Below, one piece after another: positions 33,547-53,896 of a DNA stretch of 64,000 nt. Made by a program: the position numbers and the translations under genes. A model generated the notes under the pieces. That model made no database searches and was not told the DNA's origin. It saw only the letters and a list, made by a program, of their open reading frames with translations. Numbering within the stretch: position 1 is the first letter of the stretch; every line of letters starts with the position of its first letter. This stretch comes from Stylophora pistillata. Its lineage: Eukaryota. The DNA lies in the NCBI RefSeq assembly GCF_002571385.2, contig NW_019217912.1, positions 381,380-445,379 on the forward strand. Direction: 5' to 3'.

Positions 33547-35018
33547 TATGATCGCAAACTTCCCCTAGAGGCTTCCAATTTGAAATTGAAGGCCACGATG
33601 AAGAAGCTTCTTCAAACACTCTCGATTTCAGGACTTTCTTGGTGAGCGTAGAATATCCAATAAGTTTACCAATTTAACGTGGCAATAGGCCTCGTTGGTT
33701 CAATAAAAAATTAGCGCCTCGGCTATTGGTTGGTTTTCCACCAGCGCAGGTCCACTGCAAAACTTGACTTGTTAACTAAGAGAATTTTTGATCTGTTTTG
33801 AATAAATTATTAATTCGTTATGGCTACTGTCAAAATAACTATTAGCGGTTCTTTTGTTGAAAGGAAAACAACTATGGCGGATGAATTATTTTGTCTCAGA
33901 CCGTTTCGTATTCAACAACAATTAAATTTTAAAGTAGTTTTAAGGTTTCCTCAACTGCTTCATCTACCAATATGGTGGGTTTTCAAACAAGTGTGGATCA
34001 GGTTAGATAAGTCTGACTCTTTTATTAGGGCAAATTTTGAAATAAATGATTAACACAATTAGTCTGAGGGTTCTGAAGAATAGAAATGAAAGGATAATTG
34101 AACTAAAACTTTATACTTTGACACTTAATAGCTTGTGGAGTTTGCATAGTAATTCAAAAAATCACTCTGGACTGTTATAACTTCACAGTGATCAATTTAT
34201 ATAGCAATTTTACCATTCTCTCCTGGTTTATGGACATTAGCCTGAGTAACCTCTTTAATAAGGTCATTATCGCCAATTTATAACTCACCCAACCAGTACG
34301 TAGAGCTTCTTTCTTGCTCTTTTGAAGCGTATCGGAAATATTGGTCATTTTATTGTGAGAAGAGCCGTATTCTTAAAAAAGCCTGGCAAACTTAGCTGAT
34401 AGTTAGCAGAGGGGATGGTTAGCTTAAAGATCGACTTTAGGGGCTATTTACTATTCAAAGAAATTAATTCCCATTTGCCGAAACTTCGGGAAAATTATGT
34501 TCCAGTGTAGTTTAGAAGAGATCCAATAGCTATCTTTCATACAATACCTCATTCAATGAAACGGGTCGGTACTGTGAACAGCTTAAAGCTGTTTGTACAG
34601 GGTATTCTTTCATTAAACATACAAACAAAAGAAAACTGACTTTTTCTACGGGCAAACTTATTAGAGTTAACGAATATTTAATCTCTGAAATAACAAAAAG
34701 AAAAAAACAAAACAGAGGTAGGAGTTATTTGAGTTTTACGATCGGCTAACCCTGTAGAACACGATTTCTACACAAATTTATACAGTACCACCAACAAAAG
34801 AGTTTTTGTTTAGGACGATATCGGAAACATTAGCAATCTTTTAATTCTGATACTAACAGGTCTAAAATCGAGCAATTGATAGGGCTCTGCAGGTGCCATT
34901 TCACGCCATTTGAACAAATTTTACAATGACATAACATTACGTGCTTTACGTAATCGCAAATAGACAAAAAAATTGCCGAAACAAAATATTTTTCACTTTA
35001 AGACAGAAGAAAGTAAAC

Positions 35019-36855
35019 ATGAAACTTTTGCTACTAATTACTGTTTTATTATCCCTGTTAGACTTGACACCGGGCAAGCCATTCAAAGAACGCGAAGGCG
35101 AAGGTAGTTTCATTTCCGACAATAAATCCAACGTTGACGATGAGTTGGAGACATCTGTCGTAGATGGCGATGACGAAGACGAAGAAGACGGAAGTACCAC
35201 TGAAGACCCAAGAATGAGGCAGAAGAGAAGTGATAATACGGAGCTCGAAAATGACGAAAGAAGTGGTGATTTCAGTGGAGATGACTTAGAAACTGAAGAA
35301 AAAGAAGGACAGACTAGCAAAGAAGACAAATCCTTGCTAAAAAGTGACCGTCCAAAGGGTAAAAGCGAGACAGACCTGCAGATGCAAAATACATTGGGAA
35401 TCCAACAACCTTTCACTATCACTGCAATGCAACCAGGAAAGCCTCAGGACCCATCTCAGAATGTGAAAACTCCCGAGCCGTTTTCTTTGAATTTCGCCGG
35501 TCCTGCTGGGAAAATAGAGATAACCCCATTTGAGCCTGCCATCAACAGAATGAATAAAGTCAGAAGGCGATGTATGTGTCCATTACCTTGTGGACCAGCG
35601 CACGCATATGAAGTGATTGGCTGCAGCGGACCTTACAGCATTCCTTGTGGTGGATGCATTGGTGGTGGTTGGCCCGGTCTTGGATGTGGAGGCTTCGGCG
35701 GTTACGGTGGCCCTGGTGGTTTTTATGACATGATACCTCATCCAGGATGGGGTGGCTACCCCTTATACGGTGGATATGGATTTGGGTGTGGAGGGTGTGG
35801 GGGCTGCGGTGGTTGCGGTGGTTGCAATGGATGTGGCTGGGGAGGAGGAGGCTGTGGACATCCACCAATCGTGATGTGCTGTAAGTGCTGCTTTTAATTT
35901 TTTAAGAAATGATCGATGATAGATAAGAATAAATAACTTGATTAAGAGTTAAATGATACCGAGGCATGAAGACGGTAATAAGAAGTTTCATTCATGACAA
36001 AATGGCTAAAGGAAACATGTGATGTTCACCATGAAACACTTGTTTCAACATAAAAACAAAAACAACAAGAAAAGTAAAAGAAACAAACAAACGAGACCAT
36101 AACGACCATAAGGGGAAAGAATCCAGAAAACTGTCAAATTCTTTTCTTATACGGTACAGAGAGATATCCTTTACGTAGGTAGAGAGAACCATAATTATGG
36201 TGGTTAACAACTTTTAATTACTTTACGCGACGTTACTTTAAACACAAAAACTATCTCCGCGCTACCTCATTTTTCTACTCAGTTCTAGATTTAGTATACA
36301 GCAAAGTATAGCAACATAAAAACGCAAACGAATCCGCGGGTCTTTCACTCAGGGGGCTTCTCTTGGGAGAGTCTTGTAACTGGAGGGTGGTACTTTTTTT
36401 TTTAATCGGTTGGGAGTGTACGATCAGAGAATTTTGCTTCAAAAACTTTTCAGTCTAGCTCTAACAATATTGGGACAATAATTCAAAAAACGACAGCGGA
36501 AATTTCGATCTTAAGTTTTATATTTCGCACAGTGTATAATTGATAGTGCAGTAGCTAGCCGACAACACAAAATAATACCATTCAATACACTCCTTTTGGC
36601 TTCTCTCAGCCACTTCTATTTTGCCAAAGTAAAAAGCTAACGAGGGCTTTTCTAACGAAGTCAACAAATGGATGGGGGGAAGACTTATGACAGGTGTTTT
36701 TGCCACTTCAAGCCTTTAATTTTTTACTATCATCAGGTTGTAAAAAGAATGGTAAAGAGGGGGAAGGGGAACAACCCAAACCTCAAAGAGACAACCGCAA
36801 TGTCTTTCCAGCCAAGCCACGTCATGTCAGAAAGGAGAAGCCCGGCCGTCCATGA
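35019..36855 (+). CDS. Secreted precursor (~326 aa): acidic propeptide plus Gly/Cys-rich mature region with (GCG)n; exons 35019-35880, 36737-36855
   Basis: Signal MKLLLLITVLLSLLDLTPG; D/E-rich pro region with RQKR; RRR-CMCPLPCG...GCGGCGGCGGCGGCNGC; donor T|GTAAGT at 35881 and acceptor CATCAG|GT give MCCCKKNGKEGEGEQPKP...GRP*. Confidence 0.8.
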
Positions 36856-38966
36856 GGCACTTCGTAAATCGAATTAGCCACCAATATCCAAAATAAAAGA
36901 AAAAAAATGCAAATACGAAAATAAATTTTTTAAAAATATCTGGACTGAACTCTTAAAGCCCGGTTTGACCGCAGGGCCGTGTAATATATTTGTTCTCAGT
37001 ATTAACGAAATTAAGGAATAAAGTGAAGATGATTTATTTATTTTCTGTACTTCCTCGTTTATTTTGTTTCAAGTCAAATTTTTAAGGTCTTTCAGAACTG
37101 ACGCAGCAACTCGAGTCTAATTGCAAAAGATGTAGCAAAACTGACAAATCATTCGTCACCGGCTACCTTCACCTGGACAATCAAACTACATGCGACCCTT
37201 CTGTTGAATCGATTCGATGTTTCCAACCATCGTTGAACTGAGGAAAGAGGATGATCTTAATAAGACAACTTAATAGGAAACACATTTCTCCAACTAATCA
37301 GGAACAGTGTTCTTTAATACGACCATGACAGGACTGGATCTATGCGCTCTTCACGGTCCCCGAATGCGACGAAAGACAAGTTGTTACCACTCCTGATGGT
37401 AAACTGACACCATAGCTTCTTGCATGACACGGAAGTAAAGAGCTCTCAAGAGTGCAGTCTGATCGATAATGTTATCAAACCTGATGAAGTTAAATTCTGA
37501 CGGTTGTTCAGTTATAGTTTCTTTTCTTTATAAGTATTCGACTTACTTGGCACAAATCTCTGCCGTTAAGCGTAAGTTTGATGTCTTGCGTTCTTGCACT
37601 TTACCATTTGTAGGAACTACGCCGATTAAATTTTTTTACAAACGGTAGTTAAAAGGTTTCGTTATTTAGATTGATTACGATCTCTTCTTAAGGACTTAGA
37701 GGACGTTCAATCAATCTATTTCTGTATTCTTGTCACGACAAAACGGAATTGTTAAAAAATATTATTACAAGCACTAGTGCGAACTGGAAAGGTCACAATA
37801 GATAATCACCTCCTATTCAGCCAGTGCGTTCCAAAGAAGTGTTGTGCTAAAATCAACAGAAAATGATGATGGCTGTCGTCAAATTTACTATTTAAAAAAT
37901 AAAATAAATAAATAAATAACAACAACAATTAGATAGAAACATGATCAAAAGGCGACTTCCGGTTTAGCGTAAGTATGAAATGGCTGATGCACCATAATGG
38001 CTATGCCAATTAGAACCCCCTGAATTGCTAAAGTCATTTGCTTATATTTGCTAGTTGTTAATTGTGCAATGGAATATGACTTACACACAAAACAATGGCA
38101 GGATGTAGATAAGTAAATTGTTTACAGTGCTCAAGCATTCACCTCAACCGAAGCGTTTTTGATGAGGAGCAGCAATGCTTTTGACGTTGGATGAAAGAAA
38201 CTGTAAAATGACAACGGTCGATGATAAAAAAAAAAAAACACCCACGAGCAAAAGCAAACTCAAAAAGGGACAAGGATTGTTAAGGAAGGCGAAAATGAGA
38301 AAAATTGACTAAATTTTTTATGATGTAAGTAACGTAACCTTTCTCGTGAAACGCTTTCTTTTTCGAAGCAAGCAAAGCATATTGAATGTTTATACTCTAG
38401 AAATTGGCTCCTTAACTCTGAGGATGTACTTTAAAATAACTATTTCGGTCAAAACCTTTTAATCAAAGTATAAAAAATTTTTTTTTTCTACACTGTATAA
38501 CTAAGCCTCATTTGTCACATATAGAACTTCTAAAATTTAGCTCATAATTAGGCTTTGAAATCCACTTTAGCCCTCTCGCACGTCTAAGTGATAAGGTCAG
38601 TTGTCGGGTATCAGGATATACAAGGAATAACATCGTTATTCCTTTACAATCATGGTACCAGAAAACAGCTCCACACCCATTCTCTGAAAAGAAAAAAGAA
38701 CGGAAATACCCTGACGACTCTTTTTCTTATTTTATTTGAAAAGACAACAATTCCACTTCTGTGTTGAACTGACAATTCTTTCCGTCTGGAAACTAATTTG
38801 CAAGATACATCACTTTTCATGCCTGAATGAAATCGCTACCATCTGTCTCCTCGACAATGGGAATTTATGGACGACTTGAAAGCGGCACCTGCTCCTTAAT
38901 CTTGAGATTCCGTGATTTCAATTCATTTACTTCATAAGAGGGGTGAAGAGCTCTTGTCTTCTCGTC

Positions 38967-39975
38967 ATGAAAGCTTTCACTGTTTTCGGGTTGTTACTAG
39001 TTTTGCTAGTTGTCAAAGTGACGTTTTCCCACGGTGGAGGGGAAGGCACAAACCTTCCTCACTACGAAGAAAGAATGGAATCCACAGAACAAAGCAGTTA
39101 TATCGAAAAGAGAGAATATGTAGAGAAGATGCTGGGTCCTGACTCGGGCGTCGAGGGTTTGCAACAAAAGATTGGAAGAAGAAAGGCAGAAAGATTAAAC
39201 GATGACGACGAAAGAGCAACCGAAAAGGGACGAGGGCAAGAAAAAAGTCCTCAGAAACGTTCTCATCCTAACGTCTGCCCACCTGGATGGATCTCACCGT
39301 GGGATTACGCTGGTTCACACGGAGTATACGGCTCAAATTGTGGCATGTGTGATGGAGGCTTTGGTGGGGATGGATTTGACTCTGGGTGTGGCTATGGTGA
39401 GTGTGTCGGATGTGGTGGATGTTGCGGCGGTTACGATGGATGCGAATACGGTAAATTCTATGGTGGAATATTTCGTCCGGGTGGTCGTCGTTTCCCGCGG
39501 CTGTTTAGCGACGGGCGTATTCAGCACGTTTGGTTGAGTAAGTGAAATAAACCGTGAATGTTTCAAATGTTTTTTCATTCACCTTAGTTACCAGAACGAT
39601 GTCCTTGTAAGTGTAAAATGAAGTGTTTACAGTGATAACTGATGGTGTAATAAAATAACTATTTGTGATTATATTAAGTCCATCATACCCTGGCATTAAG
39701 GCTAAAAATTCCCTGTTTCAGATTTTACTACTTTAAGGCTCCTTTCATTGAATTCATTCTAGTGAACCTGAACATGAATGCCTCTCAACAGGGAAAACTG
39801 AATTAATAGTAAAACTTAGCTTTAAGTATTAGTGTTACTTAATTATCCTTTACAATGCTTAACAATCCAAGTTTCCCAGGTAAATTATGTCACCTTATAA
39901 TTAATTGTTCTCACAGGAGATGGCCGAACAAGAAGATTTATTCCTTCTCCGTTGCTGGTCCCGCGAAACTTTTAG
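38967..39975 (+). CDS. Secreted precursor (~209 aa), Gly/Cys-rich mature region; exons 38967-39537 and probably 39917-39975 (unspliced alternative ends 39545)
   Basis: Signal MKAFTVFGLLLVLLVVKVTFS; charged pro region; QKR-SHPNVCPPGW...CGYGECVGCGGCCGGYDGC; donor A|GTAAGT at 39538. Confidence 0.72.
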
Positions 39976-40762
39976 CACTAAGTTATGTATTTCTTTAACG
40001 AGAATTAAGAATTTGAAATCACAAATCCTGTCTCCAAGAGATGTAAATTAAAAAAGTACGTAAATGAAGAATTGAATAAAAACCATACACTACTAATATC
40101 TCAGTATCCTTTATTTGAGTGTTAGCAACTTAACTTTTTTGTTGTTTTCATCAAGATCAAAAATAAAATGAAAATTTAAAATTTGCCTTTAATCCTTGCT
40201 CTTCTATATAACTTTTTTTAAATGAATTTTTCGTAAAATTTAAACCTTATGATGACGACCAAAGATAATAAATCAGTCATTAAGTAAGAGGCTTTAAAAT
40301 AATAAACCTCATAACTGTTACCGTTAGTTTGGTATTGTGTACAGGTAATTCAACAGACACTAGAAAATGTTTGCTTGAGAGAAAACAGAAAATTTGCAAC
40401 GAGTTACATACATGTGTTTGAAAAACTCTGAAACTTGCTAGTTTACCCCCTTTAACTTCATCAAAACTTATTTAATGGGCGGAGAAGGAAAAAAGGGCGG
40501 AGAAACGTCAAAAGCCACCAAAAATACCAGCGAGTTACGGTCAATCTCTCCTACGACATCGCGGCCTAATATGCCATACCTGGGTTATTTCGGAGCTAAA
40601 CAATGCTTTGGTTTCATTAACGTGATAAGCTTGTGAAATGGAGAGAATTCGGACCTGACTAAAAACTCGCATCTGCTCATACTATGGTTCTTGGCATCTC
40701 CTACTTCATTTCACGCTTCAACATCAGAAAATAAACCCCGACCGCAAAGCATAGAGTAAATT

Positions 40763-41901
40763 ATGGAAAGGTTCACACATTTGTTACTTCTTCTTTTTGC
40801 ATCGTTTCTTTCATCTTCGGGGAAGACAATTCACCGTTTGAAACAAAGTGACAAAGAAGTCAAAAGAAAAATGGAAGCTGATAAAGTGGATATCGGGAAC
40901 TACATTGATTCTAAGGGGCGGGAAGTGAGACCAATTGAACCTGGCTACATTCACCAACATTTTAGCAAGAAGAGTAAATACGAAGAAAGTGCAGCCAGTC
41001 CAAAAGAGCGTAGACATTGTTTCTGTGGGATTCCACGAAGCTATAGTTGCCCAGACGGATTCATTGCGACGCAGGTTCATTGGAACGACGCGCCTCTAAC
41101 CGGTCCACTTATGCCTCCTAATCTGCCGACAGTGGGTCCACCTTTTGGCATTGGAGATGAACAGGCTTGGCTCCAAGATTCTTATGATGGCGAACTACAG
41201 CAAGATGTTTACGGCTGGAATTGGAAAGAGAGGTTAAATGACAATGTCCAGGCGGGACCTCAGCATGATGCAAGTCCGTGTATGCAACAAGGATGGTGTT
41301 GTGAGTAGAAATTAGAGTTCTCTTAACGGCCTGGGTTGACCTGCTTTTTATCATGGTTTTCTTATTAACGGATAAAGTGTAGGAGAATTGTTTCGTTTGT
41401 AAGATTAGTGCCATCACTCGAAATTTTTCGAGTACAGACGAAGGGTTAACCTTCTACTGAAAAGCCAGCTTTAGAAACTCTTCACGATAGCAAATTTACA
41501 TTATCATCTCAGTCAGAAAATTATCGGAGTTAAATAGACCATAGTGTCTTTTTTTTCTGCGCAAATTACGTAATAGCCACTGCCATTCAATAGAAATATA
41601 TTTTTGAAAAATGCACGCTTTTTCACGAAGAATCAATTTCACACAAGCTTCTTTGAAGAGCTATAACTGCAAGTCTATTTTTTCAAAAACTTATTGGAAT
41701 ACTCGGGACCTGATTGAGCCTCTCGAAGAGGCACAAACATAAGAACAATGAAGTTATTGACATTATGTGAGGGTAATTGCTTGTTTTATAGGTTGCGGAG
41801 ACGAACCAACCAACAAGGAATCTGATGCTGTGAAACCTGACAAGACGCCTACGCAACAGGAGGAGAAAGACACTGATCGCATAATAATAAATATTGCCTG
41901 A
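40763..41901 (+). CDS. Secreted precursor (~215 aa); exons 40763-41300, 41792-41901
   Basis: Signal MERFTHLLLLLFASFLSSSG; ERR-HCFCGIPRSYSCPDG; donor T|GTGAGT and acceptor TTTTATAG|GT give WCCCGDEPTNKESD...NIA*. Confidence 0.75.
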
Positions 41902-42710
41902 TCAGGAAAAACGTTATTAGATCGGGGGGACGAGAAAAAGATCGATAAAACGACAGTGCTTAAATGGAGTAAACCTCCTACACAACTTAAACAACATGAC
42001 CACATTCTCGTAAATTTTTCCAGAGATAAAAATGCTGGGGAAATTGTATAATTGCTGTGTTGTATATTTGTTTAAGTTCACCAAGCGTCGATGGAAATGT
42101 CGCATGAAAATAGAACGCAAAAATTCTGTGTTGTTGTAGACACAGTTGCTGTGCTTTTCTTTTTACTGATCATATTTGCCTCTGGGTGAAATTTACTACA
42201 GAAATAATATTTAAACTAAACGATTCGATCGGAGAAATCTCCACCGCGTTCTCGTCTTCACTTGATGATATGTTTTGTTATGTCAGGTGAAATTGAATAA
42301 TTAACACATGTAATTATGAGCGTGTAAAGGCTTTTCCCGGAAAGATGGTCATAGTAGGACCACAAGCAACTTATTGTTCTACTTTGGTTCATAAACTGTC
42401 GCTACCAAACGTTCTTCATTCGTTGTAAACCTAAAAATTATAAAAAAGTTTACCTCCGAGGCTGCACAAATTGAATCTGCGAAAATTTATTTTTAAAGAT
42501 GAGCCAAATCTTGATAGATCTGAGGTGTTTCAACTATATTTTTAATTAAACTTATTCACGATTTGCATTGTTAATGAGTGGATGGCTGATAGTAAAAAAT
42601 TCCTTTCATGGTTTTAATTTTGAAAGTCTGACCTCAAAGATACCATTGTAGGTAAGACTCTCAGCTACCAGAAATCCAAGACTTCGATTGCAATCTAATC
42701 AATCGCCAAT

Positions 42711-43867
42711 ATGTCGGGATTTGGAATTGCTCATCTAAACATTTTTCTTTGCCTACTTGGTTTTACAATGGCTCTCGATGACTCTCACGCATTTTTCATG
42801 AGAACACACAGAGAGTCAATTGACGACGACCAAGTATTAGGATCAAGTAAATCGTCTCAAACCTCGGACTCAGAGAACCGACCAAAACTAGATGACCACA
42901 GTAATCGACGCTTCAAAAATCCCAAGAAAGTCCGTAATAAGAAAAGGTGCTTTCTAGGCTGTCCCTATGATTGTCCTGGTGGCCTCGAAGACACACTATT
43001 AGACTGCTCTCGTCCATGGGGTTGGGGTCCGGGTCCTCTGTACCCGGAGTATGGACCGCATTTTCATCGCGGCTGGGCTGGACACGGTGGTCCATTTGGA
43101 TGTAATAACTGCGGTTGTGGAGGTCCCTGGAGAGTTCCTGGTTGCCCGTGTGGCTGTAATAACCACGGCTGGATTTGTAAGTCAATTCAAAGCCTGTTTT
43201 TACTCTAATTATATATTTCCATGTTGTTTTTTCTTAAATGGAGTAACGTATGACGTATAAAAATGCAAGCTTTCCATTAAGCCTGTACGTTTGGAAAGCA
43301 ACACGATCGCTGACAGGCCATCAGTGTAACTTCGTTGAACATATTTATTAAGTTTGAAACATATTCATCTCGCTGACTGACTACTGTTTAGGTTGTGGTC
43401 AAGGTGGTGGTGAAGGCGGTGCCAATGATTGTCCGAAATTTAACGACGATGTTTCATCCAACGAGAAACCTCGACAAGGGGGGGCTCTGACACTTTTTCA
43501 TCCTTTCTTTGGAAAAAAAGTACATTTTAAGGGTCCATTTAAAGTGACACAGGGCAAAAACGTTCAACGAGGATATCGAAGGCAGGAGATCACTTACGGT
43601 GCTACCCCTAATTACGGATATGGATGGGGGAATGGATATGGATGGGGAAATGAGTATGGATGGGGGCAGCCATCAGTATATCAAGATCCTTACCAGGGAA
43701 CCTATGGTAACTGGCAAGTTCCTCAGCAAACTCAGCAAACTCAGCAAACGTGCCCAGACTGCCCGTTAGACAAGGTTGTTGGTAGTTTATTCCTATGGAG
43801 ACCTAAGGGACCAGCTAAACCAGCCAATATAGGGAAACCAGCTACGAGACGGAAAAAAAATCCATAA
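42711..43867 (+). CDS. Secreted precursor (~313 aa), Cys/Gly/Trp/Pro-rich segment plus GYGWGN repeats; exons 42711-43176, 43392-43867
   Basis: Signal MSGFGIAHLNIFLCLLGFTMA; KKR-CFLGCPYDCPGG; donor T|GTAAGT; exon 2 reads in frame into ORF 43544-43867 (RRQEITY...GYGWGNGYGWGNEYGWG). Confidence 0.78.
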
Positions 43868-45167
43868 CTGCAGGTTTAACTACGTGGAAAGGCCCCAACA
43901 AGGACACAAGTCCATAAAAGATAATACCATGATATTTAAATTCTTAGCTTAAGAAGACAAGGTGAAGTTTTCCTTCAGGTACATGAAATAGATTCCAGAC
44001 ACGGTTACGAACTGTTCTTTCTATTTTGACTGAAAGCACAAATTCCAGTTGAGACCTAGTGCATTCCTCGGAAAGAAAAGGCATCAGAGCATTTTATGGT
44101 AAAGTAATGAGTAACCTGCAAACTGCACATTCCAACTGATTCAGTTAACAATATTTTACAAATATGATAGAATATCCACAGTTATGTTAAAAGTGTTAAA
44201 GAGAGTAACAGTTTTACAAAATAAGCTTCATAAGAGCGTCAACTTCGTGTAAACTGTACGTCCTCAATAAAATTTGCTTATTTTCACGCAATTTATGTTG
44301 GAAGTGTTTCTTCAGCCAAAAATCGGCCACTAGGATCCTATGCTAAGTTCCAGGGACCATAACCGCAGAGTTATTTCTTGCTAACTCGAAAACTCCGTTT
44401 CCCATCGTTAATGGGTCAAGCAGTACCAGATACTGTACATTTTCAAAATCTCACTCCTGCATGCAGTGTTACATTACCAGCAGAGGCTTCTAAGGGAAGT
44501 TTACCAAAGCTTTGGTATACAATCCTTTTACCTATCAGTTATGCGGTACACAGGGTTAAAACGCAATTATGAGGATTATCGTGGTTAAGGCATCCGAAAA
44601 AAGAAATTATTACGATGCTTTTTTTGGTCAAACTTCACGATACATTCCCAGGTAACGCACTCACTTATATGACGAACTTGAACAAACGAAAGCAACTACA
44701 AAATGCAGACTAAGAGGAGAAATTAGAATGAATAGATCCCTCGTTATCAAATGGAAAATAAGGCAATACCGGTGTTTCTTCTGTTTTAGACACTTGATGT
44801 CTTCATCATACGCTGAGGAATACTTTTTATATCCTTCACATGTGGAGGTTAATCTCGTCCTGGTAGCAAGGTACATTTTTGTGCTAGGGCATTTCATGCA
44901 AGGCGTTGCCTCCGCGATGAGGAGGCTAACTTTGTTGTTGTGTTTTTTTTTTTAGAGAACAAGAGCTGAGATTTCAAGTGGGTGAACTCCACATTCTGCG
45001 CTTTTGAAATTCATTGCATAAATTTCTTCACCTCAAATATTTCATATAAATCTGTATAATAACAGATGTTCACACGTTCGTTGTTGGGCATGAGTTAATT
45101 TTCTCGCGTTCTCGATAAAATTCGCGTCCACGCACCCCTGTGTGATGTCCTCCATAGATTTTCATAT

Positions 45168-45510
45168 AGAGCGCTTTTCGATCGAGTGTGATAAAACCAA
45201 AACCAAAGCAGTCCCAAAGGTCAAACAAGAAGGGAAAATACCATTAATAGCCTATTAGAGCTCAAAGTAATCACAACGGCCAATCAGAAGACGGGAATTG
45301 CCATCAATAGTCTATTAGAGCTCAAAGTAAAACCGACCAAACTGCCTAGAGCGCAGGAAAATGCGAGCGACCAAGTCGCGATTGGTTTTAGTTTTGCATC
45401 TGATTGGTTGAGAGAGTGGCGCAAGTTTTTTTGGACCAATCATGTAGCGAAGTAAAGCAAAGCAATCCAGGATTATTACTTACACTCAATTAAAGAAAAA
45501 CACTGCTCTA
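45168..45510. mobile_element. MITE-like repeat with internal ~60-bp duplication
   Basis: tagagcg.. / ..ctgctcta ends; duplicated ccat.aatag.ctattagagctcaaagtaa. Confidence 0.55.
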
Positions 45511-46265
45511 AGTTGTCTTTTTCAACTTGTGCTCTTGTGAAGAAGTTCTTTGAAAAAGCTAAAGCAAATTTAAGAGAGCTTTTTGAGATATAAATTGATA
45601 TGCTTTATCCTTGCACTTAAATCATCAGTTCTGAGCTCTTGAAGAGTGCTTAAATGTTTGTATTTGCCATATAAGCTTGTCATATCATACAACTCTGTTC
45701 AAGTTCAACTCACTATTTAGAATAAAGAGGCCAAAGCCGTGTAGTAATAAGAAATGCGACAATTAGATTTAGGAAACGTCAGTCCACGAGTATCAAGGAT
45801 AATAGTTTATAAAAGGCTTTTAAGTGTATAAACATCCCCTAACGCTAATGGCTACATCCCTATCTAATGAAGCGTGTAAATGTTGTCAAGGACACAAGCA
45901 TGTCGTCTTTGTTCCTAAGTTGATTTGTAAAAAAAAAAGTGGGCGTTCCTGTCATGTGCACCATTAAAAAAGAAGCAAACATATCAGCACTCACTCCAAA
46001 AAACTTCATCTTAACACTTCACTCCGATGCAAAAGAGAACATCATTAGTGATAACTGCTGCTTGCGATTTTTTTTTTCATCTATCAGAAGCACCGATTCG
46101 GACTACCTTAAACTACCCCATGGGGTTTAGAGGGCATAAGGCTGATAAGTTGTTTATTTTACAAGATACATAAATGATGTCATGTATCAAGTCTTCAAGG
46201 TGTATCATAACATTAGGTCATAATTTCTTTGTGATATCAGGGATGTCTAAAGGGAAGAAGAGAAG

Positions 46266-47653
46266 ATGATTTTTACTAAGATTTTTCTCATTGTTTCTCT
46301 CCTCTTAATACTCTTTAAAACGGAGACTTGCGAAGGCGTCCACCGCGAGAGAAAGAAGGAAGACGCTCATAATGAAATAACCGCTCTGAGAGGCAGAATA
46401 AGAAACCATAATCTGAACCTCGATAACCCAAGAATGGTAAAGGGAGGGAAAAGAAGAGTCTCATGTTTTTTCTCTCCTCAAAAGCTCAAAGCTCGACGAT
46501 CTCGTCATATATCAAAGCGTTGCTTTGATGTCAACCCATACGGTTTTTCTCCACCCGCGGTATCCTACCCATGTGGAGGCATGAGTTGGCCTACGGTTCC
46601 TGATCCGTGGTGGCCAGAATACGGCTGGATGGACGGATGTGGCTATCCCCTGCCAGGAGGTGGACCGTGGAGTCAACCGTATCCATGGTTCCCTCCTGGA
46701 TGTGGTTGTTGCTGTCGTACGTATTATTCGTGTACTTAACAAGACATTCATGCTGAACTTAAAGGATTATATTTGATAGATAATTTGGGATGTGAAATCA
46801 ATTTAATTGACTTATGAAACAATATATTGAGCAGTCAAAGAAATACAGCTGCTATATTTTATTTTGCAAAGCTTGAAAAGGAGTTAACGTTCCTGCACCT
46901 ATTTGGCTATTTCACATCTTTTCACTGATAAGGCATTACAAAACACAAACCTTAGAACGTAAGGCTAGTGTTCTCCGCAGGCTATTGACTGGCATGTAGA
47001 AGTAGAGAGCGCTATTTATGCAATAGCGAAAATCAGACCTGAAAAAAATCAGGCCTGTACGGGATTCGAACCACTGACCTCTGCGATACTAGTGCAGCGC
47101 TCTACCAATTGAGCTAACAAGCCAACTGGGAGCAGTCCGTTAAGTTGATTCGTAATAAACCCGTGATGATAAATCAGATACGATGAATATATGAAGTTCA
47201 TATATTTTGAACTGCGGTTATAGATACGTAAGATGCACGATCCTTGCAGTAGAAGTAGAAGTAGAGTTGACGAATTTTTATTTTTCACTAGCAACGGAAG
47301 AAAGTGGCAAAGAAGAAGGTAAGCCGACCGAACCACCCACCGGCGGGAATCAGCCTACAAAGGAAACAAAACAGGCTAAGACACACCCAACCAGCCCTAG
47401 CGGAGGCAGTTCTGGCTCCGCAAGCCCTACGAGTAGCCAACCTACCACTGGCACGCAAGGTACCTTGGGGACCCTATCAACTGGTAGTACAGCCCGTGAC
47501 TCCTCAAGAAACCTCAGACTGCATTCACCAACCGCCTCGGTGCTAAGAAGCCGTTTGAAGTCTCTTAAAGACAGAGCGAGGCTTATGAAACAGCATGTGC
47601 TGAGAAAAAATTTTCCTGGACGCTCTTTGAAAGTTATCGTGGAGAACCTCTGA
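46266..47653 (+). CDS. Secreted precursor (~270 aa), Pro/Trp/Gly/Cys-rich segment then Thr/Ser/Pro-rich tail; exons 46266-46716, 47292-47653
   Basis: Signal MIFTKIFLIVSLLLILFKTETCEG; SKR-CFDVNPYG...PPGCGCCC; donor C|GTACGT and acceptor CACTAG|CA join in frame to ORF 47207-47653. Confidence 0.75.
47008..47254 (-). mobile_element. Single copy of the 251-bp tRNA-Thr-derived repeat, in an intron
   Basis: Reverse complement of the 20601 unit, diverged; flanked by direct repeat gtagaagtagag (46996-47007, 47255-47266). Confidence 0.85.
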
Positions 47654-48221
47654 GACTGAGTGTACGCACAGTAGACTTCAGTGCTTATGATAGCCCAAAA
47701 TCATTCTTCCCAAGGATCAAAGTAGTACAGACCAAAATAGGAATCAAAGTGTAATTCACCTTAAATGGAATAATGTTATGTATTAATTTAACTGTTAGAT
47801 AAGTAGTAAAGCCTAAGCAAGGCAAATAGAAACTTTGTTAACTTTCCAAAGTAAACCTGCACTCGAGGAACATCCCTCATTTAGCCTTGATTAATTTGCT
47901 GTATTATTGGGTCTTTAAAAAGAGTTAAAAACGTATGCTTCTAGCCATGTATGTACTTATTCAAAATGATGTTAGAACGTCAAACCCACCATGTTCTGTT
48001 TAAGTCAAGTCGCTTCCATAGAATTGGATCGATGCTAATCCCTTATTTGGAACTTTACAAACATCGCCTTCAGCTTCATTGAATTCTTAGACATCCTCTC
48101 GTGTTTATTTCAATTCTCTTAGATTAGATATGTAGGCCGATATTTGCCCTCTGTTATCTAACCCGATTTCTTTTTTAACTTTGTGGCATGTGATTCCTTT
48201 TCTTTTTTACTTCTGTGAAGT

Positions 48222-49997
48222 TCAAGCATTGGCATGTATCGCATTAGCGATAATTACAGGATCCAATTTCAGTCCTATAGCACCTACTACAGAACTTTCT
48301 TTGGGACTGAGTAGGTCAGCCTTCTGTCTTTCCTTTCTTTTCTGCTTTCCTTTCATCTGGAAAGTAGATATTACATCCAAATGAAATCCTTGGTTAGCTG
48401 AGTTGAATCCCCTCAATGAGCCATTTCCTTTTTTCAATGATTTGTGGAATTTTAAATGGCGGTTAAGTTTCCCTCGCCTACTCTCGACGGAAGGCCGCGA
48501 GACGCGCTCTGTGTTGAATTCGCTTTTGTACTCAGGATAATTGGTATCAACATCTTCCTTTTCCGACGGATCGAAATGCAACATACCTTGGTCTTCTGTT
48601 ACAATAGAACTAGGTTCTATTTCGTGTTCAGTTCCCCATTGCTGATAGTTGCCCCATTTGACAGTTTCCCTGAGGTCTTCTGAGTTATTGACCATCTTCC
48701 GATCCTCTTCATGCACTCCATCATACTCGTTAGGACTCTTTATTTTGTTTTTGCTGTGCGTCCAGAGATCGTGAAGTCTCTCTGGTTTCTCCAGAAGTTT
48801 TAGGTCAGAGCTGAAATCGTTGAAATCTCTAAACGGTGGTCGACTATACCTGGAAGGATGATTGGACTGGACAAAATGCATATCGCTATACTGATACTCG
48901 GGATAATGATGGACATTTGACATATCTGATGGATTCATTGCCCAAGGAGATCTCATTCCCATAAAATGAGGGAAATATCCTTGGAATGTCCAATAAGATG
49001 GATGCTGAAACCTCATAGGATGATGCAGACAATGTGGAGAGAAGTGAGAATGATACTGCATGTCAAACGGGTAAATTGGCCTGTGTAGGTAAGGAAACCA
49101 AGGTCTAAGATGTAATGGCTGACCAAGCACAACTTGAGGGTGAAAAGCTGGTGCTTCGTCTTGTGCTTTCGATTTTGGTTCATCGTTCAGCTTCAATTTA
49201 ACGTCTATGTTTGGGCCTTCCTCGGTAGACTGGTGATCGTATTTCTTCGGTTTGGGGTGTTTGTGTTTACGCATTCGTTTACCTTTGAAGGGCTTTACGG
49301 GCGTTTTCGAAGAAAGTGCAAATGGATGTGCTGGTAGGCTTGTGATGTCAAACCGCTTAATAGTATCGATTTCTCGGCTAGGTTGATTCGTTTTCCTGCA
49401 GTCTACCAAGGAACCTGTTCAAGATGTGGAAACATTTTATTTTTTGGTCATGGAAAGTAGTACCAACCACATTTTAATATAGGGGGAGAAAAATTATGAT
49501 TGTAGGCGTTTTTTTGTCTTCGAGAAATTCGGACTTACAAAGAATAGGAGATTAGACCATAGTATTCCAATTTCCTCACACTATTCGCAAGGAAAGGCAA
49601 TTTGGTGAACCCTTGTTTTTTAGATGCACGTAGGCAATGTCAGTTTTTATGAGATAACGACAATAGCTAGTTACTTACAGCAAACTGGGGAAATAGGAAA
49701 TCCAATCCCAGAGGCACAATTAAAACCCCCGCAAGATGTTGCCGGCATGACACCACAGGGTCCTCCGAGAAATACCATTCCCTGTTTAGAAAGGCAATCT
49801 GAGAAAGACGAGAAACCGTGAGGAATACGTTGGTATTTAAGGCCATGGTTTGAAAGGTGTTCAGTCTTAGTTTTGTTCTCTTTGTCAGTGATGTCATGTC
49901 CCTCTAACAATGCGCTGAGTTTATGTGCGAAATCTGCATGTATTGTTAGTAGGAAAAGGTAGAAACTAATTCGAGTTCCACGGTGTAAAGGCAACAT
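48222..49997 (-). CDS. Probable secreted precursor (~503 aa): short Cys-rich segment, then His/Pro/Phe-rich and charged regions; exons 49997-49679, 49414-48222
   Basis: Hydrophobic N-terminus (ISFYLFLLTIHADFA); GGPCGVMPATSCGGFNCASG...PVCC; donor T|GTAAGT and acceptor GAACAG|GT continue into the 395-aa ORF. Confidence 0.7.
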
Positions 49998-51129
49998 CAC
50001 AAACTTTGGAGCAAGTTTTCTCTCTACGAGGCAAATAGTTGACTTGTAACTCGTATTCTTGCGATTTATTTTGTTAATATTTGATTAGTGAGCTGACACA
50101 ACGTGTAAGGTAAGAATTGTTCAAATGAAAATAAGACATTCGTGGATCCGACCGGAAATGCCATTTGAGAATTACAGAGTACCTTCCAAGGTGTGAGGAA
50201 AGACATCATCCGAAAGAGCTTTTCCGAATTTTTCTTTAAAATTAACATCAAGACGCAGTTCTTCTCCATCTTACAACTTGAAATATCATAATTTTACGCC
50301 ATTTAAATACGTCGGAAAGGCTCCGCCTACTAAACGGGTGCAGGGAGTTTTCCAGTTTGTCTTTCCGTGGGTCAGTTTTCCTTGGTGAATAAGTCGGGGG
50401 TTATTAAGAGTACATCTGTCCACCAAAAATCTAAGGATAGCCCTAAACTGAAATGGAAAACTATGTGTCAGTCCCACCTGGTTGCTAACACGGTTTTGGC
50501 AAATATAGCTGCTAGGTAGCCTGAACTACGTCTATAGTGAATAATCTACCTGGGTTATTCCCCAAGGATCGATCAAAGAATTAAAGCCTAGGTGGAATTA
50601 ATTTTTTGTCCTCAGAAAAATAAACGTTTCCGGGCTCAACATATGCATGTATGGGGGTCCTGATTACCGGTCAAAAAAAAGTCATAGAAACAGAGAGAGT
50701 GCTTTAAAGCTTTTTCTAGAAGCATCTAACTTTAATTCCTTATCTGTCTACTGTCATGGCAAATACACAACATAATAATAAGGGCAAGACTTGAACGCTT
50801 TATCTTTCTCTGGAGAGTTGGGAACACTGTGTCTATCGTGTCCCGTAAATGGGGTGAGTAAGGATAAGGAAAGCTTCTTTAAATTTTGTCACTTTTGCTC
50901 CAAATTAGTTGACCGCTTATGCTGAGGAAATCGCAAAGAAACTGTAAAAAAATATCACTTTAAAGTACAAGCATCTTAAATTTAAGCTCCATAAAATTAT
51001 GATTTTTGTAAAGTATTTGGCACTATCAAATGCACAGCGATGATCCTTTAATGACCGATGACTCACTGTTAATCTTGCGTGTGGGAACATAATTTAGTAA
51101 TTCAAATTAAGGAATCGAAAAGGGTCAGC

Positions 51130-51410: not shown

Positions 51411-52011
51411 ATATCACACTACATAGCACAGTATATATATTATAGCAATATCTAGTATACCATACAAGAGTCTATTTACTGTATACAACTACTGTGATAT
51501 GGATGGATTAATAGCTTAGGTTACGCTTAATGAAAGGGAGAACACTCAGAAAAATTACAATTCATTTAACCGAAACGAAATACCTGCTCGTATATGATAG
51601 GATTGATACAACTACAATGCTTCGTCTACTAAAATGATACATTCTAAGTCTAATAGCGGTTTGAATAGTCTTATTGGTAAGCAGTTTTTCCCTTACCGTA
51701 GTGATTATAATTTTACTGTCTTTGTTCACTTCCTTCGGTTTAGCTATCTGAAGGGTAAGGACCAAGTAAAGAATTTAAAATATATGCATGGCTGCCTGTA
51801 AACCACTCATATTGTTTCAGGCTTTTGAAGTTGACAGCTTATGATCGATTGTTTAACAATAAATGCGAACAAGCTGAGGCAGTATCTCAAGAGTTTTGAC
51901 TCTGCAGGTTGTTCTATCTATGAGGTAATACAAAAGTTCCCGCCTCTTCTATTTGATTTTAATTGACAGGCACATCCCCTTTTTCACACAATTGCTTTGA
52001 AAACGTTCCTA

Positions 52012-53896
52012 ATGGCGTTTCTGTCCTTTTGGATTTGGGCCGTCCTGAGTAACGTTGTGATAATAGGCATTCTTGCTGCTCCAAATCCAATATATGGAAA
52101 TAATCAACAACGCCGTTCTCTTCCCAATGGAAATCGAGATTTAAGAGCATCAAGCCTTGGACGTCCCTTATCAAAGTTCGCACAGGATCAAAATGTTAAC
52201 TCAGCGTCGTCTTCACCAACCAAACAGATCGTTCAAACTCAAAATTACAGAACCACACAACAATATTCATTTCCATCGAAATTCATGCCCTTGGGCAAAA
52301 ATCAACCACTACAGAGTTTCACGCAAGATGATCAGCCACCAAAGAAGATGACGCCACCAGGTGATCAGCAGAAACAGAAAGCCGTGGAGAACAAAGACGA
52401 GACGGTTAACACTAATAAGTGTGGGTGTGGGTGTGGCTGTTGTTGTGGAGCAAATAATGATAATAAGAATGGAGAGACTGCAAACAACAAGGACAAAAAC
52501 TGCTGTTGCTGCTGCTGTTGCCAGCCTCCCTGTTATTGCTGCCAGCCATGTTGCTGTTGTCAGCCATGCTGCTGCACTTGTTGTCATCAAGACATTTGCC
52601 ATCACCACGAACATGACCACGAATGTTGCGTGCATCACGATTGCTGCGTGCATCACGTGCATCATATCACTCATGACTGCCCCTGCGCCCAGCCATGCTG
52701 TTGCGGATGCCCACAAACATGTGGCTACTCACAAGCTTGCGGCTGCCCACAAACTTGCGGTTGCCTACAAACTTGCGACTGCCCACAAGCTTGCGGCTGC
52801 TGTTGTCAGGGGTGCAGTTGTGGGATCCCGGGGCCTCCTTGTCATGGGTGTGCTGGTCTCTGTGGCCTCCAAACTCCCTGTAACTGTGGGTTATTAGGAT
52901 GTGGATGCCCTGGATGCCCATTCCAGGCCGTACCTTGTGGCTGCTGTGGGTACACTAATGAAAATGCTGGAGATCAAAATTATCTTTTGCCTTATAAAGA
53001 AGGTAATTCAAGTATTATTTAGCGTAAACTATTCATTGTTGTTCTCAGTCTTTATGCTCCTTTTTTTGCATTCTAGAAAGAAGTAAAGAACTAAAAGGGG
53101 AGGAGGAAGAGAAAGCAGCTCGGCGTCAACTTATTCTTCCACCTGGCTACCTTTTCCCGGCTTTTCGACGTGTAGAATCCTTCAGTTCCCTTAAAAGGTT
53201 AGTCAATCCATTTTCAGTTAAATTCCCTATGAAATAAATGTAGGGTTTAACACTGGAAAGCATGAATTGATTCATACTATCTTGTTAGTGTGGTTGTATT
53301 AGTGTAACGCAACTATACAGGGCACAACAATTATTTTTCTGCTGGTTCTTTTAAATATAGAGTTTTCTCATTTCCTACATTACCTCTCTAGAGAGCGAGA
53401 ATTTCGAGAGGTATCTTTAAAGTCACAATTCACTTTAAAACTGCGTTTTATTCATCAGGGCAAGTGAAAACTGCAATGAAATTCAAATAATTAAAAAGTT
53501 ATCTCAATGCACATCGAAGTTAGGGGATTTTTTTTCACCAAATTTTGGAAAAACTACGTTTGCATAACTGGATAGTAAACACTAGTTTATGTGTTCTGTT
53601 TATTCTAGTCTAGATAGGTCTGCTCCGATCTAATCTCCGTTTTTGTCAGCGCCATTAAGTCCTAGGAACAAGTACGATTTCAAATGAAGGGTGTTCCTTT
53701 TAATATTACTTTCATCTTACTGTGTATCAAAAAACAACTATTTTGATTTTGATCTGAGCTGAGACTGTGAAGGATTTCCCCCATAATATGTCTATTTTAA
53801 ACCAACAGGACCAAAGTTCCCTTTTCTAAGCGAATGTACCGACGGATGGCACGCCTGAACACTCGACTGATACCGTATCGTTTATGGTTCTGGTGA
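52012..53896 (+). CDS. Secreted ultra-high-cysteine/His-rich protein (~399 aa); exons 52012-53002, 53077-53197, 53809-53896
   Basis: Hydrophobic N-terminus MAFLSFWIWAVLSNVVIIGILA; Gln-rich pro region; CCCCCCCQPPCYCCQPCCCCQPCCC, His-rich CHHHEHDHECCVHH, (CGCPQT)-type repeats. Downstream exons are phase-compatible. Start codon uncertain. Confidence 0.75.

Follow-up and report, generated by a model that had tools for sequence, protein, structure and literature searches.

Six two-exon genes (g1-g6; Table 1) were found at positions 35019-49997 of a Stylophora pistillata window, that is, of the whole 64-kb stretch of DNA analysed. On balance, they are best explained as a tandem cluster encoding secreted, cysteine-capped products. 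Inspection of the sequence revealed a phase-1 GT donor and an in-phase AG acceptor in all six genes, the single intron lying at, or just past, the terminal cysteine cluster. Five genes (g1-g5) share the plus-strand orientation, while g6 is on the minus strand.

Table 1. Features of the six genes (positions in the window; a slash marks the splice point)
Gene	Feature	Positions	Strand	Description	Evidence
g1	exon 1, coding part	35019-35880	+	signal peptide, acidic pro-region (pI 4.4), RRR site, Gly/Cys-rich segment	
g1	predicted intron	35881-36736	+	phase 1; acceptor TTTTTTACTATCATCAG/GTTGT	sequence
g1	predicted exon 2	36737-36855	+	GT completes Cys codon, then C-KK-NGKEGEG..., stop	
g2	exon 1, coding part	38967-39537	+	signal, pro-region, QKR site, Gly/Cys-rich segment	RNA contigs and reads
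g2	intron	39538-39916	+	phase 1, splits A/GA (Arg)	RNA joint 39537>39917
g2	exon 2	39917-39975	+	R-DGRTRRFIPSPLLVPRNF, stop; basic tail	RNA joint
g3	exon 1, coding part	40763-41300	+	signal, pro-region, RRH site, 94-aa segment CFCGIP...QQGWC + T	RNA
g3	intron	41301-41791	+	phase 1, in TGT Cys codon	RNA joint 41300>41792
g3	exon 2	41792-41901	+	GT, then C-GDEPTNKESD...INIA, 35-aa acidic tail, stop	RNA
g4	exon 1, coding part	42711-43176	+	signal, pro-region, KKR site, 76-aa segment CFLGCPYDCPGG...NNHGWI + T	RNA
g4	intron	43177-43391	+	phase 1, in TGT Cys codon	RNA joint 43176>43392
g4	exon 2	43392-43867	+	GT, then C-GQGGGEGG..., stop	RNA
g5	exon 1, coding part	46266-46716	+	signal, basic pro-region, SKR site, Pro/Trp-rich segment	
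g5	predicted intron	46717-47291	+	phase 1, splits C/CA (Pro)	sequence
g5	predicted exon 2	47292-47653	+	119-aa Ser/Thr/Pro/Gly- and Lys-rich tail, pI 10.8	sequence
g6	exon 1, coding part	49679-49997	-	signal, short pro-part, 49-aa segment ending ..PISPVC + T	
g6	intron	49415-49678	-	phase 1, in TGT Cys codon	sequence and database model P0006
g6	exon 2	48222-49414	-	GT, then S-LVDCRK..., stop	protein matches

Organization of the genes and their products

The coding part of exon 1 opens with a signal peptide, followed in all genes by a charged pro-region, then by a basic site (RRR, KKR, SKR, RRH, QKR or KYQR) and finally by a low-complexity segment in which Gly, Pro and aromatic residues abound and which carries cysteines at its start and at its end. 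All six genes combine a hydrophobic N-terminus with a basic site ahead of the Cys-rich part, cleavage being predicted. The basic site directly precedes the first Cys in four of them (g1 RRR/C, g3 RRH/C, g4 KKR/C, g5 SKR/C), the first Cys standing 6 residues past KR in g2 and 11 residues past KYQR in g6. The mature segments comprise 49-103 aa, with 11-39% Gly, 5-15% Cys and 7-23% Pro: that of g1 (103 aa; 39% Gly, 15% Cys) ends in ..IVMC plus the T of the split Cys codon, that of g2 (92 aa) holds ..GCGGCCGG.., and that of g5 (65 aa) reads CFDVNPYGF...PPGCGCCC plus the C of the split codon.

The tails encoded by exon 2 are wholly different between the genes and vary from 18 to 396 aa. A preliminary description of this DNA regarded them mostly as charged or polar. 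They are basic in five genes (pI 9.3-12.0; 38 aa and pI 10.4 in g1) and acidic in g3 (pI 4.4). The tails of g4 and g6 are of considerable length and in part rich in aromatic residues or His, so that they go beyond a plain charged tail. The g4 tail (157 aa, basic) contains GYGWGN repeats, and one RNA run bore an in-frame 18-nt deletion at 43616 in its exon. The 396-aa exon 2 of g6, rich in His, Pro and aromatic residues as well as in Lys, matched 25 proteins with E <= 0.01 among 813 candidates. Its identity was 38-64% in 24 relatives and 100% in the coral's own model P0006, the former indicating that this exon is conserved coding sequence. An AATAAA signal is located 37 nt past the g1 exon-2 stop. 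No AATAAA or ATTAAA was found within 1200 nt past the predicted g5 stop, which somewhat weakens the g5 exon-2 model. A tRNA-Thr-like sequence is situated inside the predicted g5 intron (47051-47123, minus strand).

Splice joints and RNA evidence

All six donors and phases proposed earlier stand in the sequence: ATGTGCT/GTAAGT at 35880 (g1), TGGTTGA/GTAAGT at 39537 (g2), TGGTGTT/GTGAGT at 41300 (g3), TGGATTT/GTAAGT at 43176 (g4), TGCTGTC/GTACGT at 46716 (g5, directly after CCC and with an in-phase acceptor) and GTTTGCT/GTAAGT at 49679 on the minus strand (g6). The split codon encodes Cys (T/GT) in g1, g3, g4 and g6, Pro in g5 and Arg in g2. Thus, the placement of the intron at a Cys-Cys cluster, as originally described, is exact for the former four genes only; in g2 some 45 residues separate the CC cluster from the intron downstream, and in g5 the intron breaks a Pro codon. 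In g3, g4 and g6, the split TGT codon belongs to the sole Cys-Cys cluster of the protein. Were an intron placed at random, the probability of its interrupting a Cys codon in phase 1 next to another Cys would be 0.0013-0.0047 per gene, so that chance placement is unlikely. The acceptors are also alike in part: g1, g3 and g4 share AG/GTTG followed by T or C, g6 has AG/GTTCC, g5 CTAG/CA and g2 CAG/GA.

RNA was surveyed over the stretch 38900-44899 in whole-colony libraries from four studies (three contig runs and one raw-read run). The junctions predicted for this stretch were recovered from both contigs and raw reads: 39537>39917 (g2) in two of the three contig runs and 17 raw reads, 41300>41792 (g3) in all three and 3 raw reads, and 43176>43392 (g4) in all three and 17 raw reads. 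Each is a GT..AG joint in phase 1, including the single intron expected near the end of g2. Since no further splice joints were listed in these 6 kb, g3 and g4 each contain exactly one intron. In the stranded raw reads, the first mate mapped to the minus strand, which accords with RNA from the plus strand. RNA depth within the g3 intron was close to zero. The g2 intron is often retained, as unspliced contigs spanned 39509-39946 (two runs) and 39173-39974 (one run).

Database models support the joints of g3 and g6. Exon 1 of g3 is 100% identical to residues 1-179 of P0001 (215 aa), and its exon 2 corresponds to the C-terminus of the same protein, in agreement with the RNA joint. Exon 1 of g6 equals residues 1-106 of P0006 (PFX26334.1 / XP_022789476.1; 503 aa, ...PVCCSLVDCRK...), which is spliced exactly at 49679>49414. 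Database protein searches returned no spliced model for the g1 or g5 joint, and the junctions at 35880 and 46716 are predictions from sequence. In all three g1 relatives that reach the donor site, the unspliced ORF calls read C-K (TGT AAG), and in all four g3 orthologues they read GWCC-K. This is what read-through of a T/GTAAG donor should give, suggesting that the donor is conserved in the relatives of both genes. The phase-1 intron thus holds as a family mark: all six are in phase 1, three with RNA (g2, g3, g4) and two with database models (g3, g6).

Kinship of the genes

Pairwise similarity of the mature segments is weak, only three of 15 comparisons being reached by no more than 3 of 300 shuffles. 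We then compared profiles with hhalign, using gene alignments of 1-5 rows each and 60 column shuffles as a control. Five of the 15 pairs gave P <= 0.003, each above 60/60 column shuffles, although the alignments are small and the probabilities range from 11 to 70%; the other ten pairs yielded nothing. The best match, g4-g5 (probability 70%, P = 4e-5), extends almost from end to end, with the introns about 6 residues out of register, and is followed by g1-g4 (61%), g3-g4 (20%), g1-g2 (20%) and g1-g3 (11%). The matches include the basic site chosen here as the cut point. Shared motifs are KR-C-[FM], CP.G, PEYG and PGC.C.C. For g6, neither pairwise nor profile comparison revealed similarity to g1-g5, the profile scores falling below the shuffle mean.

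The earlier view of ancient tandem paralogues is therefore sustained in part: the profiles link g1-g5 and leave g6 without a match, so that hidden paralogy has moderate support for g1, g3, g4 and g5, weaker support for g2, and no sequence link for g6. No DNA repeats of at least 40 nt occur among the six genes, and orthologues elsewhere are 46-90% identical to their own gene (for g5, the ORFs P0031, 90%, and P0032, 72%), a much closer match than that between paralogues; for these reasons the cluster appears to be ancient. Taken together, the data make it quite probable that g1-g5 go back to a single ancestral gene, which was duplicated in tandem long ago and passed on its intron. For g6, which would be included by its architecture and position, the same origin has about an even chance. 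The tails at the phase-1 joint may have been exchanged or may have freely diverged.

Comparison with known families

Searches of nine exon-level pieces against Pfam gave no match above the gathering cut-off (two weak ones had E = 0.2 and 0.95). The terminal cysteine-rich domains of minicollagens have the spacing CX3CX3CX3CX3CC. A six-frame reading of the 64-kb window held neither matches to this pattern nor Gly-X-Y runs of at least 8 triplets; the minicollagen signatures are thus absent. Nevertheless, minicollagens, NOWA and related cysteine-rich cnidocyst wall proteins resemble g1-g6 in being cnidarian and secreted, with a signal peptide, a pro-part that ends in basic residues and a low-complexity Gly/Pro-rich core with Cys caps ending in CC. 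Cnidocyst wall proteins are described as polymerising via disulfides (PMC6161364). Unlike these proteins, g1-g6 have long unrelated tails past the CC cluster.

The vertebrate SCPP cluster offers a parallel, as a family recognised by exon-intron structure and clustering, not by sequence. Like SCPP genes, g1-g6 are tandem, secreted, fast-diverging and of low complexity, and their origin is read from architecture and intron phase. However, SCPP genes have phase-0 introns and encode Ca-binding phosphoproteins, while g1-g6 are cnidarian and have a single phase-1 intron at the Cys cluster. Conotoxin and beta-defensin prepropeptide genes combine conserved introns with hypervariable mature sequences, and their products show the same order of signal, pro-region, basic site and Cys-rich part. 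Their introns part the signal, pro and mature regions, whereas in g1-g6 exon 1 encodes the whole of this series and the intron comes after the Cys-rich part; furthermore, the g1-g6 segments are of low complexity and are not compact knots. Keratin-associated proteins (KRTAPs; high-sulfur and high-Gly/Tyr) are tandem Cys- and Gly/Tyr-rich matrix proteins hardened by disulfides, but they are intracellular, single-exon and devoid of signal peptides. Their resemblance to g1-g6 is convergent and one of composition only. Two neighbouring genes (51997-53022 and 57305-57736) resemble KRTAPs even more.

Discussion

The proteins would enter the secretory path, a furin-type convertase would cut just ahead of the first Cys, and the cysteine-capped segments would be cross-linked by disulfides into insoluble secreted or organelle material. 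By analogy with cnidocyst walls, which are described as polymers of cysteine-rich secreted proteins (PMC6161364), we propose this sequence of events tentatively, as something short of an even prospect. A material-like nature accords with the Gly, Cys and Pro content of the segments, with Atlas models that are disordered (pLDDT 0.41 and 0.36) and with neighbouring genes that likewise follow a KR/C...CC grammar. A wider proposal, which we consider rather unlikely as a whole, is that the six genes and their neighbours form an undescribed hexacoral locus for material spanning at least 100 kb. Cysteine-capped low-complexity pieces would be freed at basic sites and joined via their end cysteines, and the phase-1 intron in the terminal Cys codon would serve as a joint for swapping unrelated tail exons. 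Because the intron and exon 2 both begin with GT, a retained intron still encodes Cys, followed by a stop within 1-10 codons; intron retention, frequent in g2, might then decide, as an inbuilt switch, whether a tailed or a tail-less form is made.

Among the alternatives, the strongest keeps the family and the intron but treats the products as precursors from which soluble bioactive peptides (antimicrobial, toxin-like or signalling) are released: the Cys-rich segment would be cut at the basic site and trimmed behind, with the pro-region and tail as discarded spacers. The basic site directly ahead of the first Cys in four genes, the KK directly past CCC in g1 and a neighbouring polyprotein with three KR/CG... 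units between polar spacers speak for it. Yet a basic pair directly past the Cys cluster is absent in g3, g4 and g5, the RK of g6 comes six residues on, and the conservation of the long g6 tail across 24 relatives is unlike that of a discarded piece. Low-complexity Gly/Pro/Trp-rich segments of 49-103 aa, predicted to be disordered, are also unlike compact knotted peptides, and no Pfam toxin or peptide family was matched by the nine pieces. We regard peptide precursors as improbable.

Still less probable is the absence of any family, with unrelated adjacent secreted Cys-rich genes each gaining a donor independently. Most gene pairs lack similarity, codons for Cys-Lys (TGT AAG T) make a good splice donor as they stand, TGT[AG]AGT is common (28 sites over both strands of the window), and the unspliced frames stop 1-10 codons past the donor, making a short ancestral end ...CC-K-stop conceivable. 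Against independent gain stand the uniform phase, the acceptor shared by three genes, by which a Cys-Cys pair straddles the joint, the five profile links, and the same part order, KR-C-[FM] start and, in five of six genes, orientation; moreover, a single gain of a 3' exon is much more parsimonious than six separate ones. A role as skeletal organic-matrix proteins active in calcification is suggested by the stony-coral host, by secreted, taxonomically restricted proteins and by two acidic stretches (the g1 pro-region and the g3 tail, each of pI 4.4), but is very improbable. The composition is Gly/Cys/Trp-rich rather than Asp-rich, and in its text and tables the skeletal proteome paper on S. pistillata (PMC7115838) contains neither the g3 and g6 accessions covered by the look-up (XP_022789504.1, XP_022789476.1, PFX26336.1, PFX26334.1; g1, g2, g4 and g5 have no known accession) nor any PFX2633x entry; its sole prefix match is the unrelated XP_022789591.1.

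What is new here is a probable coral family of secreted cysteine-capped proteins, so far undescribed: two of the six genes are 'uncharacterized' in databases, and no named record was found for the other four. Corals have many lineage-restricted secreted proteins without a known role, and architecture, tandem position and profile similarity join at least five such orphan genes into one family. The cluster is a clean example of an intron position outlasting sequence similarity and overturns nothing known. With the family as a starting point, relatives can be sought in other cnidarians, and the question arises of which coral material, be it the stinging-capsule wall, mucus or matrix, uses cysteine-capped low-complexity proteins.

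RNA evidence for the splicing of g2, g3 and g4

Six open reading frames, g1–g6, occupy 35019–49997 (five of the six on the plus strand) of a window with a G+C content of 34–46% and no N. In each, a signal-like hydrophobic N-terminus leads into 57–184 residues of charged pro-region that close with a basic site; a Cys-rich segment of 49–103 residues (Gly 11–39%, Pro 7–23%, Cys 5–15%), which is also aromatic-rich, comes next. RNA from four studies, comprising three contig runs and one stranded raw-read run, was aligned to the region 38900–44899, which holds g2, g3 and g4. The introns that the preliminary description had proposed for these genes were all seen as spliced joints: that of g2 in 17 raw reads and in contigs of two of the three runs, that of g3 in 3 raw reads and all three contig runs, and that of g4 in 17 raw reads and again all three contig runs. 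No other joint was listed within this region in the four runs. All three joints are GT..AG; the aligner left an ambiguity of 1–2 bases because the intron and exon 2 both open with GT, and among the ambiguous placements the GT..AG one is the only canonical choice. For g3 (40607–42588) and g4 (42701–44287), single contigs begin ahead of the start codon and reach the poly(A) region with one joint each, and both are therefore two-exon genes.

The g2 intron (39538–39916) is often retained, as collinear contigs span it in all three contig runs, and the raw-read depth is ~7 inside it vs. ~58 in exon 1, beside the 17 junction reads. Inside the g3 and g4 introns, these runs show almost no coverage, so that DNA contamination is excluded as the source of the g2 intron depth. 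The retained form would end in ...HVWLSK-stop, replacing the basic tail of 19 residues. Three in-frame indels differ between the runs and fit coding sequence: a loss of 18 nt at 43616 from the GYGWGN repeats in exon 2 of g4, a loss of 3 nt at 40787 from the Leu run in the signal peptide of g3, and a gain of 3 nt after 41042 in the g3 pro-region. RNA contigs were also present between g4 and g5, at 44709–44899 (two of three contig runs, depth ~2.5), where no gene is annotated.

A phase-1 intron at or behind the terminal Cys cluster

At each of the five donor positions proposed earlier, and at 39537 in g2, a GT donor lies one base into a codon, and for each gene a downstream AG with a pyrimidine tract keeps the frame in phase 1, so that the introns of all six genes are of phase 1 (Table). 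The split codon encodes Cys in g1, g3, g4 and g6, just as had been claimed, and in g1, g3 and g4 another Cys follows directly; g5 has Pro and g2 has Arg at the split codon. In g3, g4 and g6, the intron falls in the sole Cys-Cys cluster of the entire protein, and the probability that an intron placed at random would fall there, and in phase 1, is 0.0047, 0.0021 and 0.0013, respectively.

Table. Splice junctions of g1–g6 (donor>acceptor) and neighbouring genes of like grammar, as read from the sequence; window positions unless a further locus (L003, L004, L006) is named
Feature	Position	Strand	Donor	Acceptor
g1	35880>36737	+	T|GTAAGT	AG|GTTGT
g2	39537>39917	+	A|GTAAGT	CAG|GA
g3	41300>41792	+	T|GTGAGT	AG|GTTGC
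g4	43176>43392	+	T|GTAAGT	AG|GTTGT
g5	46716>47292	+	C|GTACGT	CTAG|CA
g6	49679>49414	-	T|GTAAGT	AG|GTTCC
Single ORF of 341 aa with signal-like start, 60 Cys, CCQP-type repeats and His block; no obvious intron	51997-53022	+		
Cys/His-rich gene: signal-bearing ORF 54931; Cys-rich ORF pieces 56420-56614, 57290-57733	54931-57736	+	GAAG|GTTTGT (probable)	TTTAG|GTTGTTGG (probable)
Ultra-Cys ORFs	from 63526 on			
ORF with signal and very acidic leader, then five Cys-rich cassettes	L003:6014-6622, L003:7779-8159, L004:607-1011, 2247-2882, 4488-4850, 6352-6921			
Open frame of 557 aa: three KR|CG...Gly/Cys/aromatic units with Lys-rich polar spacers between	L006:2114-3784	-		

One of the six genes matches, at 100% identity, a database protein bearing the name Stylophora pistillata, and the genome is therefore that of a stony coral. 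The search with g3 exon 1 led to P0001 (215 aa, PFX26336.1 / XP_022789504.1, "uncharacterized protein LOC111329160"), a database protein whose C-terminus is g3 exon 2, and the search with g6 exon 2 led to P0006 (503 aa, PFX26334.1 / XP_022789476.1), which opens with g6 exon 1 and whose sequence over the joint is ...PVCCSLVDCRK.... Both are predicted models, and for the g6 joint they are supporting evidence rather than independent proof. If the GenBank numbers of g6 and g3 are positional, there is room for one model between them, though g4 and g5 both lie there; g4 or g5 may be absent from the original annotation, and the g5 search gave no g5 model.

The g1 acceptor was picked by the shared AG|GTTGT motif together with the poly(A) signal, AATAAA, 37 nt past the predicted stop, because exon 2 of g1 is short and ORF length is useless for the choice. 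Exon 2 of g5 falls where several frames are open, and no AATAAA was found within 1200 nt past its predicted stop. No spliced g5 model occurred among the 17 candidates of the database search, which held two unspliced ORF calls only; an exhaustive search starting from g1 exon 1 gave relatives among 7 proteins at E <= 0.001 and no spliced model, and exact-pattern scans of metagenome contigs for the exon 2 starts of g5 and g1 were without a match. The g1 and g5 joints therefore stay predictions. A tRNA-Thr (anticodon AGT) called by ARAGORN at 47051–47123 on the minus strand, inside the predicted g5 intron, may be either a genuine tRNA gene or a repeat derived from a tRNA.

Conservation of the intron site

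The relatives used to check the site come as unspliced ORF calls, in which the reading frame continues directly into the intron. For g1, we kept three database proteins (P0033, P0036 and P0037) and left out P0034, which ends ahead of the Cys-rich part, P0035 (67 aa), which covers the N-terminus only, and P0038 and P0039, which look like unrelated low-complexity matches. The g3 orthologues carry GWCC-K-(F/L) in 4/4 cases, the g1 relatives reaching the site C-K in 3/3, and the g5 orthologues CCC-R-(T/K) in 2/2. C-K with a T at the start of the next codon corresponds to TGT AAG T, as a conserved T|GTAAGT donor would give if read through, which is indirect evidence for the donor. Similarly, the orthologue ORFs of g6 exon 2 show G-S or G-L ahead of W-x-x-C-R, and a leading Gly codon of the GGT type would be expected, again indirectly, from read-through of an AG|GT acceptor.

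Proposed kinship among the six genes

The preliminary description had regarded these genes as ancient paralogues diverged beyond obvious similarity, to be tested by comparing profiles of the mature segments. No direct DNA repeats of >= 40 nt are present within 34000–51000, and Smith-Waterman comparison of the Cys-rich segments singled out three of the 15 pairs (g1-g2, g1-g4 and g3-g4), whose scores were reached by <= 3 of 300 shuffles. For the profiles, each segment was taken to begin four residues ahead of the first Cys and to stop one residue short of the split codon, and orthologues were included. Five of the 15 pairs gave a profile match; the other ten gave nothing. The g4-g5 match runs nearly end to end (probability 70%, P = 4e-5, 68 columns), the g1-g4 match covers the N-terminal 25 columns (61%), and those of g3-g4 (20%), g1-g2 (20%) and g1-g3 (11%) are weaker; each of the five links beat 60/60 column-shuffled controls. 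The g4-g6 and g1-g5 scores were not above column shuffles, being reached by 49/60 and 32/60 of them. Thus, g4 is the hub joining g1, g3 and g5, with g2 attached to g1 via the Gly/Cys part, and g6 is joined to the others through architecture only. Among the motifs in common, KR-C-[FM] opens the segment and PGC.C.C closes it; the others are CP.G and P.P..PEYG. Aligning g4 with g5 leaves their introns ~6 residues out of register, an offset that would need a small indel or intron sliding.

Identity to orthologues is 51–71% for g3, 72–90% for g5, 46–56% for g1 and 38–64% for g6 exon 2, and the duplications are therefore older than those species splits. A search of the assembly with a five-gene profile found no more family members, returning its five inputs from 7 candidates (lower bounds from a loose first pass), and own-genome searches with exon 1 of g4 and of g5 returned the query alone.

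The neighbourhood is rich in genes of the same KR|C / Cys-rich grammar (Table). The probable junction in the gene at 54931–57736 would be of phase 1, with the AG|GTTGT acceptor of g1 and g4. The cassettes of the neighbouring loci L003 and L004 hold WPCMW(P/S)CCC; three visibly start with EKRCGCG, and two show AG|AAAAACG(G/T)TGCGG, which would be a phase-1 acceptor. The L006 polyprotein sits ~32 kb past the window's end, and its middle unit ends in GGCC-K plus a polar spacer, mirroring the g1 layout; the TGT AAA at this point is not a donor.

Discussion

Pfam matched no family on nine exon pieces. In the ESM Atlas, P0001 and P0006 are modelled as disordered (pLDDT 0.41 and 0.36), with no usable feature match or structural neighbour, and the structure rows (all TM <= 0.31) are meaningless for this reason. 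Because Cys caps flank a disordered Gly/Pro/aromatic core, cleavage at the basic site would expose the first Cys and similar genes co-locate, the analysis suggests that the products may form a secreted material cross-linked by disulfides. The known cnidarian case is the cnidocyst wall, made of proteins rich in cysteine, minicollagens and NOWA among them (PMC6161364). The products of g1–g6 may work alike, yet they stand outside the minicollagen family, membership of which is ruled out as they have neither Gly-X-Y runs nor CRD spacing.

That the products are instead peptide precursors is less likely, given that the 396-aa tail of g6 is conserved and that no cleavage site lies directly behind the Cys cluster in g3–g5. 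A skeletal-matrix role is unlikely, and was dropped as the main reading, since the g3 and g6 accessions are missing from the text and tables of the S. pistillata skeletome paper (PMC7115838).

As for the disulfide-linked material, we consider it a rather doubtful, if conceivable, extension that the locus swaps tail exons at the phase-1 joint and uses a splice-or-retain switch. None of the papers covered by the literature search names these genes or describes their family or architecture. The general kind is familiar: secreted Cys-rich proteins in a tandem cluster restricted to one lineage, with a shared origin visible in the gene structure.
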